Source: Selaginella moellendorffii
Lineage: Eukaryota; Plantae; Lycopodiophyta
Assembly: GCF_000143415.4 (NCBI RefSeq)
Contig: NW_003314327.1
Coordinates: 25,116-89,115 of the forward strand
DNA length: 64,000 nucleotides
Direction: 5' to 3'
The notes below the pieces were generated by a model, which saw only the letters and a list, made by a program, of their open reading frames with translations, did not search any database and had not been told where the DNA came from. This document shows, piece after piece, positions 26,810 through 50,932 of the stretch. Each line of letters starts with the position of its first letter. The first letter of the stretch is position 1. The position numbers and the translations under genes were made by a program.

Positions 26810-27215
26810 TCACTTTCCCTTAACATTCAGTTCTGAATCTGAAAGGGGCGCTTCAGCAGCTCCAGACTCGATGATCTCCGCACAGGTACAAACCTGCATC
26901 AACTTTTGGTGCTTTCGAGAGGTTGGTCGGTGGAGTCTGATCTGGTTGAGCAAACAAGATCCTGTATATCTTCAAGTGCTGCCACTTCACTACTGTTTCC
27001 CGCCCAAACCATTCCTCAAGCTCGGACCTCCATTCTCAGTTTTGGTCGACCGTCTGGACTGCTCGCAAGGAACTCGAGGATGGCTTAAGACGAGAGTCAA
27101 CTGCTACTTGGTTGTGGTGGTGTTGTTGCTTTACCTGGACGCGGCAATTCGGATACAGTGGGGATTCCCATCGACTAGGTGGCAAGGCTACCATGGCCAC
27201 AGGGAATGTGGTCGC
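26810..27215 (-). pseudogene. Collapsed copy of the FAD amine-oxidase gene (5' and 3' ends joined, about 1 kb deleted)
   Basis: Matches 49406-49660 joined to 50735-50932. Confidence 0.88.
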
Positions 27216-29912: not shown

Positions 29913-30085
29913 TGTAACGCATGTGATTATGGGATGAGATTTGGATATACTGCCATTGTGAATCTTTGGAACTTTGGGGGATAAATGGGGATAAAATAAT
30001 TACTAAGAGCTCTTTCATCAAGCAATTACCCCTTTTCCAGTTGGTTTAAGGTGAGAGATAGAGTGCATTACATGTGGTATCAGAG
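29913..30085 (+). mobile_element. Short 160-bp LTR followed by tRNA-iMet PBS (truncated TRIM/LTR element)
   Basis: TGTAACGCA...TGCATTACA inverted termini (29913-30072), then TGGTATCAGAG at 30075-30085. Starts exactly where kinase homology stops. Confidence 0.75.
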
Positions 30086-41129: not shown

Positions 41130-42380
41130 CCGACCACAAAACTTCCCGCCAAAATAGCCCCTCCTCGCGTAGCACGCAAGCGGCCACCAGCGTCACCGCT
41201 CCAGCGGCATCAGCGGGGCACCGCCTCGGCCTCGCCCAGCCTCCCACTAGATCCTTCCCGGTTCTTCTCGAACAGCGCGTCCAGGCTTCCACACTTGGCG
41301 TGCAAGCTTGCGAGCGCGGACTCCACCGCTGGAGTGGCGATTCCTAGCTCGAGAGCTCGAGCGTTAGATCCGCGAGAGCCGACGCTGCCGCGAGCGCGCT
41401 CACGATGGTGGCTTCGTCTGGGCGAGAGTCCATGGCGCGGTACGTGGCGATGGCGTCTTTGTAGCGGCCGTGGCGCACGTAGGTCGAGATCATCGAGTTC
41501 CAGGAGACTGCGTCCTTGTCCGGGATGCGATCGAACACGAGCTTGGCATCGCTCAAGCTCCCACAGTTGGAGAAGACGTCGAGCTTGAGCGATCTGTCTG
41601 CCGCCATTCTCTCGTGGATCGCCTTCCCGGTGTCTAGATCTCCAAGCCCAGCTGCGGCGGCTAGAGCGCTTGCAAAGGTGAAGAGATCGGGGCTGCCGGA
41701 GCCATCGTGTTCCATCTCCCGGTCAGTTTCCAGAGCTTCATGCAAATGCCCCAACTGGGCGAGATCATCGCGTTCCAGGCAACGATTTTGCTCGCGCAGC
41801 AATTTGCTGGCCTCGCAGATCTAGCATCGCCACCGCCGTGCTTTGCACGAATCGATCGGGATAGAGCCCTCGATCCTGGGCGTCAGTGAGAAGGCGCCGG
41901 CCGTGACCAAGATCACCACGATCGCTGCAGGCAGCGAGCATAAGTGATCCCATTGGGCTTACAGGTGGATCTCTGGTAGCATTCCAGTGCGCGATCTAGA
42001 TCTGTCGCCTCGGCAAATGCAAGCCCAGCTGCGGCGGCTAGAGCGCTTGCAAAGGTGAAGAGATCGGGGCTGCCGGAGCCATGGTGTTCCATCTCCCGGT
42101 CAGTTTCCAGAGCTTCATGCAAATGCCCCAACTGGGCGAGATCATCGCGTACCAGGCAACGATTTTGCTCGCGCAGCAATTTGCTGGCCTCGCAGTACTC
42201 GCCACATCATGCGAAAGTAAATCCATCCGGCTCCTCGAACACCTCCTGGGCCTCCGCCGCTGACCTCTCTGGGCATAATCCGCGATCATTGTGTTCCAGG
42301 CCACCAGGCTCTTCCTCTCCATGCCCAGGAACAGCGCTCTAGCGCTGGCGATGGAGGTGCCGCATCGGGAGTACGAGTGA
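41130..42380 (-). pseudogene. PLS-class PPR pseudogene with an internal 176-bp duplication
   Basis: SPDLFTFASALAA, GSLSDAKLVFDRIPDKDAVSWNSMIS, KSLVAWNTMIA, with frameshifts. 41643-41818 matches 42020-42195 with 2 mismatches. Confidence 0.8.
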
Positions 42381-43483: not shown

Positions 43484-44055
43484 TCATATGAACGAATATT
43501 CGTTGCCCAGTGAAATGGTCAATTTCCTTGTTAACTTTTCTTCTTTGTTCTGTTTCCTCAGATCATTACATTGACTGCAATTTGATCTATTCACCATATC
43601 TGATATCCTCACCTAGAACTCTCCGTGGGGAATCAAAGAGGTTGAGGAGACACTCTTAATCCAAGTTTAATTCGTTATTTCTTGGAATTTTTGAATTTGT
43701 TTGTGTTCACTGTTCCGCCAAGAAGCCCCTCAAATTCATAGAAAGGTGATGGATTTGTGTAGAAGCTGCTACTTCCGGTCCAAAGCTGCCATGAAGGCTT
43801 TACTTCATACTCACGGTGGTGGGATTGAGAGCCCGTGAGCATTCTATTTGATCACGAGTTTGTTCTCGTGACTACTGTGCAAACAAGGCTGGAATACTAA
43901 TAACTACTACGTACCAGAAAAAGCCAATGAAGCAGCCAACTCCAAACGCAATCGGACTCGTCCCACCATTGACGTTTCACCCCTTGACGATCCTCAGGAT
44001 CGACACCGTGACACCGTCTGGACTGTTAGAACTAAGCTGAACAGGCACACAACCA

Positions 44056-44127
44056 GGGCAAGTAGCTTAGTGGTAGAGCACCTGGCACCAGTATAGGAGG
44101 TCTTGGGTTCAATCCCCGGCCTGTCCA
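44056..44127 (+). ncRNA. tRNA-like (Ala-type acceptor) Pol III unit in the 5' LTR
   Basis: 72-nt cloverleaf with A box TAGCTTAGTGG, B box GGTTCAATCC, non-canonical anticodon loop CACCAGT and TTTT downstream. Confidence 0.8.
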
Positions 44128-44309
44128 AATCCATTTTCCAACATGGTATCGGAGCTATGGTTGGATGGCCTGACTGGCAGGTAGGGATGTGTGGCGTGTT
44201 CAGCTTAGGGGGGAGTGGCCTGTGGTAGACATGGACTGGCAGGTAGGGATGTGTGGCGTGTTCAGCTTAGGGGGGAGTGTTGGAACTAAGCTGAACATGC
44301 ACACAACCA

Positions 44310-44381
44310 GGGTAGGCAGCTCAGTGGTAGAGCACCTGGCACCGGTGTAGGAGGTCCTGGGTTCAATCCCCGGCCTGTCCA
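44310..44381 (+). ncRNA. tRNA-like (Ala-type acceptor) Pol III unit in the 3' LTR
   Basis: GGGTAGG-CA-GCTC AGTGGTA GAGC-A-CCTGG CACCGGT GTAGG-AGGTC-CTGGG TTCAATC CCCGG-CCTGTCC-A, with TTTT downstream. Confidence 0.8.
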
Positions 44382-44402
44382 GATCCATTTTCCAACATGG
44401 AC

Positions 44403-44561
44403 TACTCGCAAGGAACTCGGGGATGGCTTAAGACGAGAGCAAAGTGCTACTTGGTTGTGGTGGTGCGCTTGCTGTACGTGGAAGCGGCAATTCGGATAGA
44501 ATGGGGATTCCCATTGACAAGGTGGCAAGGCTACCATGGCCACAGGTAATGTGGTCGCCAT
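44403..44561 (-). pseudogene. 5' fragment of the amine-oxidase gene (copy D), the TRIM target
   Basis: Matches 50774-50932. The empty-site sequence CCGTCTGGACTGCTCGCAAGG is present in the intact gene. Confidence 0.85.
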
Positions 44562-44639
44562 ACTCTCTATGGCCACTTCGTTTTGTTTTAAGAGGTTCCT
44601 TGGATTGCAGGACGAGATCCAACGGGGGTGTTTTGAGTA

Positions 44640-45465
44640 GTGACCAGCGCAAGGTGAGTGGAAGTTTTAGTGTCATCCGCACATTATTTTTGTTTTTGTG
44701 GCAGTTGAAGCTCGCCGTTTGCCAGCTCTCGACTTGCGTAGACAAGGGACAGAGCTATCCTTGAACAGGACGGCTTAAAAGGACGGCTGCTGGTGGCGGC
44801 AGCAAGCTGATCCTTCTTCCAGTTAATTTTTGTAGTTGTCTGTTCAGTCATAAGGAGAATGTGTTACAGGAAATGTGGAATTGTGCATACTCAAACGCGA
44901 GCTTTCCAATCTACGCAGGCGATTCTCCCTCTTCCAAAATGCTTTCGGACATGGCAAAGAGTAAGGAGGTTACCATCATCAGAACGACGTGCGATCATCT
45001 CTACAATACTTGCTGCATCTACGGAAAAGATGGCTCTCTAAAAGGTAAACATCGGAAGGTTTGCTTTTCTGACGCGTCGTCTACGGTTTTTTCTCAGACC
45101 TCTTTCACACCAGGTTCACTTTTTTGACATCGATATACCAGGAAAGATACAGAAGTATACTGTTGATTCGGGTAAGGTCCTGCAGGCATTGCGACAAGCA
45201 AAATAACTCACATTGCTCACTGACTCAGATGTTGGACGAATCGGTGTTGGTATTTGCTAGATGGCAATGACTTACGCAGCACGAGGTAGGAAGAAGACTA
45301 ACCATGTAGCTGCTGAGGATTAAAATCTATGTTGGTGCCAGGCGTACATATAATCTGCTATCCAGGAGCTTTCAACATGACTACGGGACCAGTGCATTGG
45401 GAACTCCTCCAGAAAGCTAGGTAACTCTTTGTTTCTTTCTTGTTGGGCGCGGAATTTACTGGCAT
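44640..45465 (+). pseudogene. Deleted omega-amidase copy (copy D)
   Basis: [26 protein letters not shown]. Shares deletions with the other decayed copies. Confidence 0.88.
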
Positions 45466-49405: not shown

Positions 49406-50932
49406 TCACTTTCCCTGAACTTTCAGTTCGGAATCTGAAAGGAGCGCTTCAGCAGCTCGTCTCCCTGACAGAAGTGCTCCGTCGAAAGTTGCTGAGACTC
49501 GGTGATCTCCGCACAGGTACAAACCTGCATCAACTTTTGGTTCTTTCGAGAGGTTGGTCGGTGGAGTCTGATCGGGTTGAGCAAACAAGATCCTGTATGT
49601 CTTCAAGTGCTGCCACTTCGCTACTGTTTCCCGCCCAAACCATTCCTCGAGCTCGGACCTCACTATTTTCTCAAGCTCGGCATCGGAACTGGTGGAATAT
49701 CTTCCGATCAATGTTACCGAGACGAGAGCTTTTCCAACAGGGGCGTACGAAGAGCAGACGCTGCTGGGAAAGCACATATTGTTGATGACGCCTTTGTCAG
49801 TGCCGTTCAAGAGCAGGACAGCTTCCTTGATTGGGGCTCTATCGGCAGAAAAGTAGAGGCAGACAGTGCTGCGAGCTGGCTTATCGGTGCTTTCGCAAGC
49901 TGTTTTGCTGCTCAGCAAACGAGCTGCTTCCGGACCTTCGACTGCCACTATTATCCCGTACTTGGACTTGACAACCTTTCCAGTATCAAGTCTCACCTTT
50001 GAAACTTTACCGTCTTCTCCGACAAGCAGCTCTTGTACTCGGGAGTTCAACTTGATTGATTCTTCTGGAAGGCTTCGAGCAAGCTGCTGTGATATTTCGC
50101 CGATGCCTTTAGCGGGAAGGCAGTTCTGTCCCAGAGCCAGGCACTTGAAGACGAAGTTAAAAAGCCGGGACGTGGTTTTCAGCTCTCTGTCGAAGAAGAT
50201 GCCACCGAAGAACGGTCGGAAGAATCGATCTATCATCTGCGAGGAAAAGCCGTCGGTCTTCAACTTTTCTCCGATCTCTACTTCAGGTGCCGAGACAAGT
50301 TTCTCAAATGGTTGTGATGCTGCTTGAAGCCTGACAATGCCGACGAGGATTTTGTCCTGAATAGTACCAATCGGATTACCAAGCGACAGTATGCCGTCGA
50401 CCAGGTGACGGAACGGGTCTGCCACTTTGTGAAAGCGTCCGTCAAACCAGACAAAGGCTCCGGCATAAAAGTTCTTGAGCTCCAGCGCTTGGTAGTCGAG
50501 AACTTCTGCAGCCTCCGGATATGCGGATATGAAGATCTGGAAGCCCCTGTCCAGGACGTAGCCTTGGACGGTGTCACTTCTCACTCGACCTCCAACTCCA
50601 TCCGACGCTTCAAGCAGCTGGAATGTGATGCCTTCTTTGTGCAAGCGTCGTGCTGCCGCGAGACCAGCAAGGCCTGCTCCAACTATTACAACGTCAACCT
50701 CTGGAGGAGAAACGTTATCAGCAGATTCAGATGCTCCATTCTCAGTTTTCCAAGGCTGGTCGACCGTCTGGACTGCTCGCAAGGAACTCGGGGATGGCTT
50801 AAGACGAGAGCAAAGTGCTACTTGGTTGTGGTGGTGCTGTTGCTGTACCTGGAAGCGGCAATTCGGATAGAGTGGGGATTCCCATCGACTAGGTGCCAAG
50901 GCTGCCAGGGCCACAGGTAATGTGATCGCCAT
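49406..50932 (-). CDS. Plastid-targeted FAD-dependent amine oxidase / phytoene-dehydrogenase-like oxidoreductase (At3g09580-like), intronless, intact
   Basis: 508 aa with a transit-peptide-like N-terminus, VIVGAGLAGLAAA, EASDGVGGRVRSD, LDRGFQIF and GDHRVSATFDGALLSG. Confidence 0.92.
   Translation of the reverse strand: MAITLPVALAALAPSRWESPLYPNCRFQVQQQHHHNQVALCSRLKPSPSSLRAVQTVDQPWKTENGASESADNVSPPEVDVVIVGAGLAGLAAARRLHKEGITFQLLEASDGVGGRVRSDTVQGYVLDRGFQIFISAYPEAAEVLDYQALELKNFYAGAFVWFDGRFHKVADPFRHLVDGILSLGNPIGTIQDKILVGIVRLQAASQPFEKLVSAPEVEIGEKLKTDGFSSQMIDRFFRPFFGGIFFDRELKTTSRLFNFVFKCLALGQNCLPAKGIGEISQQLARSLPEESIKLNSRVQELLVGEDGKVSKVRLDTGKVVKSKYGIIVAVEGPEAARLLSSKTACESTDKPARSTVCLYFSADRAPIKEAVLLLNGTDKGVINNMCFPSSVCSSYAPVGKALVSVTLIGRYSTSSDAELEKIVRSELEEWFGRETVAKWQHLKTYRILFAQPDQTPPTNLSKEPKVDAGLYLCGDHRVSATFDGALLSGRRAAEALLSDSELKVQGK

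Follow-up and report, generated by a model that had tools for sequence, protein, structure and literature searches.

The 64-kb stretch of Selaginella moellendorffii DNA analysed here (the window) carries a small LTR element at 44019-44402, and each of its LTRs contains a tRNA-like unit. This locus raises the questions of whether the feature is a transposed element at all, to which family it belongs, and what would transcribe it. TRIMs whose LTRs contain tRNA-derived sequence are known as Helenus (Kojima 2024, Biology 13:119, PMC10886601). S. moellendorffii is the sole plant with a characterised Helenus family, Helenus-1_SMo (PMC10886601), which has an LTR of 120 bp, an internal part of 85 bp, a total length of 325 bp and a 5-bp TSD (PMC10886601 supplement). 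Plant Helenus is treated there in only three sentences (PMC10886601). As detailed below, the feature is real, the class to which it had been assigned is correct, and the family is already known. The element is, with high confidence, an old transposed copy of Helenus-1_SMo, published in 2024 from S. moellendorffii.

Structure and insertion of the element

The 374-bp element comprises two 120-bp LTRs and a 134-bp internal part, and is bounded on both sides by TGGAC (Table 1). A preliminary description of this DNA had proposed the 374-bp length, the 120-bp LTRs and the 5-bp TSD, together with an iMet-type PBS, a PPT and a lack of coding capacity, and all of these held up. The PBS TGGTATCGGAGC begins at 44144 and abuts the 5' LTR, the PPT AGGGGGGAG at 44269-44277 abuts the 3' LTR, and none of the ORFs inside the element was of note. 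The arrangement is that of a TRIM (two LTRs, less than 1000 bp in all, non-coding), with the PBS by the 5' LTR and the PPT by the 3' LTR as in Helenus/TRIMp3 elements. The TGGAC on both sides agrees in length with the 5-bp TSD of plant and fungal Helenus. The 8-bp inverted termini that had also been attributed to the LTRs are perfect in the 3' LTR only (TGTTGGAA...TTCCAACA); in the 5' LTR, as in the published consensus, seven of the eight positions agree.

The two LTRs can be aligned with each other without gaps. They differ at 10 positions, nine by transition and one by transversion, corresponding to 91.7% identity and a K2P distance of 0.090. The internal part contains two tandemly duplicated units of 50 nt and 62 nt, both terminated by a PPT, so that the element has two polypurine tracts. 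A repeat search and an alignment indicated that the units are identical save for a 12-nt gap in the first, with 46 nt shared at 100% identity. This duplication (44166-44277) had not been part of the earlier account. LTR probes of 18 nt and 22 nt matched only the two LTRs of the element in the 64-kb window (chance expectation, ~0).

Table 1. Coordinates in the window of the element, its target site duplications and its tRNA-like units.
Feature	Position	Strand	Remark
TSD, 5' copy, TGGAC	44019..44023	.	single TGGAC at the empty paralogous sites of the window
5' LTR, 120 bp, TGTTAGAA...TTCCAACA	44024..44143	+	7 mismatches to the Helenus-1_SMo LTR consensus (by eye)
PBS TGGTATCGGAGC and first 22 nt of the internal part	44144..44165	+	no difference from the published consensus
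First internal duplicated unit, 50 nt, 12 nt missing, extra PPT AGGGGGGAG at 44207-44215	44166..44215	+	
Second internal unit, 62 nt (consensus positions 23-85), ending in the functional PPT at 44269-44277	44216..44277	+	
3' LTR, 120 bp, TGTTGGAA...TTCCAACA	44278..44397	+	3 mismatches to the consensus
TSD, 3' copy, TGGAC	44398..44402	.	paralogy with 27055 and 50769 begins exactly here
tRNA-like unit, 5' LTR, CCA at the anticodon position, one acceptor-stem pair an A-C mismatch	44056..44127	+	Rfam, 42.6 bits
tRNA-like unit, 3' LTR, CCG at the anticodon position	44310..44381	+	Rfam, 44.3 bits
A-box-like motif TAGCTTAGTGG, 5' LTR	44063..44073	+	fits TRGCNNAGTGG
B-box-like motif GGTTCAATCCC, same in both LTRs	44106..44116 and 44360..44370	+	
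TTTT, possible Pol III terminator, 7 nt past the 5' LTR unit	44134..44137	+	read-through would be required here
TTTT, possible Pol III terminator	44388..44391	+	would set the 3' end of the element RNA

The sequence from 44398 onward recurs at two places, at 50769 and at 27055, where identity is 83.7% over ~1.2 kb and 93% over the initial 251 nt. At both paralogous sites, ~27050 and ~50764, the element is missing and TGGAC occurs once (...GTCGACCGTC-TGGAC-TGCTCGCAAGG); the sequence of the filled site is ...GACACCGTC-TGGAC-[element]-TGGAC-TACTCGCAAGG. Contigs from four public sequencing runs were also placed on positions 43700-44750; among these, X3 is a DNA run, and X6 and X10 are RNA runs. One X3 contig joins 44025 directly to 44405 and skips 379 bases (374 + 5), with at least 39 letters fitting on each side. 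It follows from the empty sites in the paralogs and this DNA contig that the element-free form occurs in paralogs and also in an allele, or a closer paralog, of the locus. Because the 5-bp TSD and the empty sites are found together with two LTRs, a PBS, a PPT and no coding capacity, the element is a retrotransposed insertion.

tRNA-like units and transcription

Both 72-nt units match the Rfam tRNA model (RF00005) over its full length, at scores above the gathering score of 29 bits. A scan of the whole window at gathering thresholds returned these two tRNA matches only and none to 5S rRNA. ARAGORN identified the 5' unit as Trp(CCA) at its default setting and the 3' unit as Arg(CCG) at a relaxed threshold only, and drew a cloverleaf for both. 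The 3' unit was missed at the default setting because of its unusual anticodon arm and a T>C change of this copy at tRNA position 8. Absence of a tRNA-like unit from the 3' LTR was ruled out, as Rfam scores the 3' unit above the 5' unit.

The A-box-like motif of the 5' LTR fits TRGCNNAGTGG, which we take to be the A-box consensus of tRNA genes. The corresponding motif in the 3' LTR is CAGCTCAGTGG, with C instead of T as its first base. Boxes A (TRGCY...YGG) and B (GGTTC), by which the tRNA-derived LTR sequence of Helenus is recognized, are thus present in the element. The preliminary description had folded 72 of the 120 LTR bases as a tRNA with A and B boxes, preceded by CAA and followed by TTTT. 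The tRNA likeness and the B box stand for both LTRs, the A box in its full form for the 5' LTR; CAA sits 4-6 nt 5' of each unit and TTTT 7 nt 3' of each.

When the 72-nt units and the complete LTRs were folded by free energy, the cloverleaf was not recovered and the folds were no better than those of shuffled sequences (z of 0.2-0.8). The forced cloverleaf lies 4.5-5 kcal/mol above the minimum free energy. Unmodified tRNA sequences commonly fold uninformatively by free energy, and we regard this result as uninformative. A bacterial promoter and terminator scan, which is not applicable to a plant nuclear element, gave nothing. The anticodon is CCG in the 3' LTR and in the consensus, and a G>A change gives CCA in the 5' LTR. 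Both LTRs have a non-canonical anticodon arm: A stands where U33 is expected, and the 31-39 pair, the innermost of the stem, is a G-G or G-A mismatch. The unit of this element is probably no working tRNA, in agreement with Kojima, who considers it unlikely that the units of Helenus function as tRNAs (PMC10886601).

According to the model published for Cassandra and Helenus, the A and B boxes of the tRNA-like unit would provide an internal promoter for Pol III. The polymerase would begin immediately 5' of the unit of the 5' LTR, pass the TTTT seven bases beyond it and stop at the TTTT of the 3' LTR. The resulting RNA would have a terminal repeat of ~80 nt, together with ~6 nt of U5 and ~30 nt of U3. 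T runs of four or more occur on the plus strand of the element at 44134-44137 and 44388-44391 only; therefore, a full-length template would need read-through of the first TTTT (leaky termination), which a transcript begun in the 5' LTR would reach after ~80 nt. Among the promoter motifs, neither LTR has a change in its B box, and the 5' LTR retains an intact A box. Kojima treats Pol III transcription as validated for Cassandra but as lacking experimental validation for Helenus (PMC10886601). On balance, we lean towards the Pol III step for this element.

The RNA runs provide some information on transcription of the locus. An X6 contig of 92 nt corresponds exactly to 44188-44279, including the duplication junction that is private to this copy. 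Another X6 contig of 612 nt (record 24) extends from the internal part through the 3' LTR and past its TTTT into the flank, and then across a splice. Its flank is identical to the locus over 51 nt and then shows the variants of the empty paralog at ~50.8 kb. We did not accept this contig as proof of a chimeric TRIM-gene transcript, as it may be an assembly chimera with that paralog, and only its LTR/flank junction was counted. A GT..AG joint from 44542 to 44608 is seen in X6 and X10 alone, and the DNA runs are without it. RNA contigs of this kind reveal no starts, ends, strand or polymerase. At most, they place the copy in RNA and point to some RNA that spans the junction between the 3' LTR and the flank.

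The contigs that contain the LTR look like Pol II or read-through RNA and not like a Pol III product. In an alternative reading, the retrotransposition template is not driven by the tRNA-like unit but is made by Pol II or by read-through of host transcripts. The unit itself would then be a remnant of SINE or tRNA capture or have another role, for example as an RNase P/RNase Z site at which read-through RNA is trimmed to unit length. The LTR lies within longer RNA-run contigs that cross TTTT, one of them with a GT..AG splice (X6 records 24 and 25), the 44542-to-44608 joint is confined to RNA runs, and the copy is located in a transcribed gene region. In addition, with TTTT right after the 5' unit, Pol III would mostly produce an RNA of ~85 nt, unfit for reverse transcription of the full element. 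However, a Pol II promoter would have to fit into the ~32 nt of LTR that lie 5' of the unit, a very short space, and the contigs are blind to RNA starts, ends and strand, with record 24 possibly chimeric. Kojima reports the A and B boxes to be better conserved than any other part of the Helenus LTRs in fungi, animals and S. moellendorffii (PMC10886601), and the B box is unchanged in this copy, whereas 10 other LTR positions have changed. We consider a template made without the tRNA-like promoter unlikely. If the RNA is real, the units might also act as RNase P/RNase Z sites that excise a unit-length template from Pol II transcripts, instead of or besides acting as a Pol III promoter; this variant appears quite improbable.

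The element RNA would be reverse transcribed from the 3' end of the initiator tRNA-Met. The plant iMet PBS is, we presume, TGGTATCAGAGC, and the PBS of the element matches it at 11 of 12 positions. The base at which it departs is the same in the Helenus-1_SMo consensus. Read in this way, the PBS would predict a host tRNA-iMet with a 3' end of ...GCUCCGAUACCA. Copying and integration would depend on an autonomous LTR element that supplies reverse transcriptase and integrase in trans; a search of the window found no such partner. The only other PBS-like string in the window, at 30075, has one mismatch, is without an LTR pair and is within chance expectation (0.4). In the segment 30075-30110, the B-box-like GGTTCAATTTCC comes 13 nt after this string (TGGTATCAGAGA), and 1 kb around it contains no LTR pair. 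The string may derive from the leader of a different retroelement or match by chance. Two details could be new for plant Helenus, namely the 3'-end iMet-type PBS and the occurrence of the copy in RNA contigs that pass TTTT into a spliced host transcript.

Relation to Helenus-1_SMo and other small retroelements

The preliminary description had brought up the name Helenus, which is the correct published class (PMC10886601), and had suggested a comparison with it. We compared the element with the printed Helenus-1_SMo consensus by eye, using no aligner, and cross-checked the differences against read variants. The 5' LTR agrees with the consensus at 113 of 120 positions (94%; mismatches at LTR positions 21, 38, 45, 67, 70, 80 and 105) and the 3' LTR at 117 of 120 (97.5%; mismatches at positions 5, 36 and 40). 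These seven and three mismatches account for all 10 differences between the LTRs. At the three mismatches of the 3' LTR (44282, 44313 and 44317), most other read contigs show the consensus letter. In the internal part, consensus positions 1-22 are identical (22/22), and positions 23-85 agree at 61 of 63, the exceptions being one substitution and a 1-nt deletion. Overall identity is ~96% over 325 positions, compared with the family threshold of at least 80% identity over at least 80% of the length. The idea that the family might be unknown is thereby withdrawn.

The element and Helenus-1_SMo have in common the 120-bp LTRs, the tRNA-like unit, the termini, the PBS, the PPT, the 5-bp TSD and the host. 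They differ in the private 134-bp internal part of the element with its two PPTs, in 10 LTR substitutions, and in the internal substitution and deletion. These differences are the decay of one copy and do not define a separate family. An internal part of 134 bp instead of 85 bp could be read as the mark of a new Helenus family or subfamily, or the element could be Helenus-1_SMo in another Selaginella species. However, the extra 49 bp are internal sequence of the element itself, duplicated in tandem, and other contigs are unduplicated (one joins 44169 to 44269 with 45 letters between, and X6 has the consensus sequence at a loose end at 44238). The identity of the LTRs to the consensus and the unchanged PBS region also speak against a new family. 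As to the species, the ORF at 49406-50932 encodes a 508-aa amine oxidase with 98% identity to S. moellendorffii LOC9645542, compared with 66% for the next match, from Diphasiastrum. Both versions of this alternative are close to refuted.

Further copies are evident outside the window. The DNA run X3 has 113 contigs on the stretch 43700-44750, mostly on the LTRs, and loose contig ends at both LTR boundaries continue into unrelated flanks. A complete solo LTR is contained in a 741-nt contig of the RNA run X6 (loose ends at 44278 and 44397), and its upstream flank recurs in X10. The upstream flank ends in ...CACAATAC and the downstream flank begins with AATACGAC..., so that AATAC forms an independent 5-bp duplication. 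This is a solo-LTR copy of the family embedded in a transcribed region elsewhere in the genome. Two runs labelled organism B and D were considered as evidence of the family in other species and rejected; their flanks are identical to the window paralogs at ~50.7 kb and ~27.0 kb, and they most likely come from the same species. Although both units exceed the Rfam tRNA threshold, an explanation of the locus as two locally duplicated tRNA genes or pseudogenes with chance TSD-, PBS- and PPT-like strings is refuted by the precise empty sites in two paralogs and one DNA contig, and also conflicts with the many other copies, including the solo LTR, and with the match of a published TRIM consensus over the full length of the element.

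Other Helenus elements, from Pucciniales, Agaricomycetes, bivalves, chalcid wasps, fishes and other groups, are likewise TRIMs with a tRNA-derived LTR containing A and B boxes. Fungal Helenus share the 5-bp TSD, whereas that of animal Helenus is 4 bp. Most fungal Helenus are primed from the tRNA anticodon loop, in contrast to the 3'-end iMet-type PBS of our element. We know of no sequence similarity between the element and other Helenus families beyond the tRNA-like core.

Cassandra of land plants, with which a comparison had also been suggested, resembles the element as a non-coding TRIM of the proposed class 'TRIMp3', in which the small-RNA gene of the LTR has an internal promoter for Pol III and an oligo-T. 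In Cassandra, however, the LTR unit is derived from 5S rRNA and not tRNA-like, and the Rfam scan of the whole window found no 5S match; the element does not belong to Cassandra. The tRNA-derived SINEs (SINE2) share with it the tRNA-like head, the A and B boxes, the presumed drive by Pol III and the non-autonomous nature. SINEs, however, lack LTRs, a PBS and a PPT and depend on LINEs, which mobilise them by target-primed reverse transcription, whereas the element has all the cis signals that characterise an LTR retrotransposon. Helenus has been proposed to originate from the insertion of a SINE2 into a TRIM LTR (Kojima, PMC10886601).

State of the copy and its surroundings

This copy is decayed. 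Its LTRs are 8% apart, mostly by C>T and G>A changes, and the internal duplication is private to it. Of the seven changes of the 5' LTR from the consensus, six are of the type C>T or G>A and affect mainly CG or CHG sites, a pattern that would be expected from deamination of methylated cytosines in a silenced repeat. A substitution rate of 1.3e-8 per site per year is commonly used for rice. At this rate, which is not calibrated for Selaginella, the distance of 0.090 over 120 sites corresponds very roughly to an age of ~3.5 million years.

The minus strand at 44403-44561 encodes the first ~50 residues of an amine oxidase paralog. In BLASTP, 61 residues of this paralog matched at 74% identity, the last few of them inside the LTR, and the homology ends at the element. 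Paralogy within the window is absent beyond ~10-20 nt upstream of the insertion. The element is thus located in the first coding exon of a truncated amine oxidase copy, near codon 55 and close to the edge of the duplicated block. It lies almost at a duplication or rearrangement breakpoint (43990-44576).

On the plus strand, a carbon-nitrogen hydrolase gene or pseudogene and then a protein kinase follow downstream of the element. At 45230-45270, the carbon-nitrogen hydrolase copy reads GVGIC and then a stop where its relatives go on with a conserved segment, and it may be a pseudogene. Paralogous blocks of 81-93% identity are found at 22.4-24.0, 27.0-29.9, 34.1-36.9 (inverted), 44.4-47.1 and 50.8-54.2 kb. 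With their amine oxidase 5' end, carbon-nitrogen hydrolase and protein kinase, these blocks form a local segmental duplication cluster, and only the 44.4-kb block carries the TRIM. Contigs of the RNA runs delimit a 65-nt GT..AG intron at 44543-44607 on the plus strand, and a second joint connects 44635 to 44703 with 165 other letters between. The joints in 44542-44747 suggest a spliced 5' region of the carbon-nitrogen hydrolase gene family, which would lie head to head with the 5' end of the amine oxidase gene and overlap it.

The other ORFs of the window represent typical plant nuclear genes (mTERF, LRR receptor kinase, GH18 hydrolase). An 818-aa ORF at 71-2527 shows a strong match to DUF7869 (1.6e-41). 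Upstream of the TRIM, a direct repeat of 176-183 nt (41643-41825 and 42020-42202) is 97-99% identical at a spacing of 377 bp.

The importance of the finding goes little beyond annotation, and the Pol III question concerns the whole class and is no more testable here than at other copies. The locus offers a textbook example of an insertion, with the filled site and two empty paralogous sites within one window, and it demonstrates that a plant Helenus is able to insert into the first coding exon of a gene. Because Helenus copies pass Rfam and ARAGORN, they would inflate the counts of tRNA-Arg and tRNA-Trp genes in Selaginella unless they are masked as Helenus.
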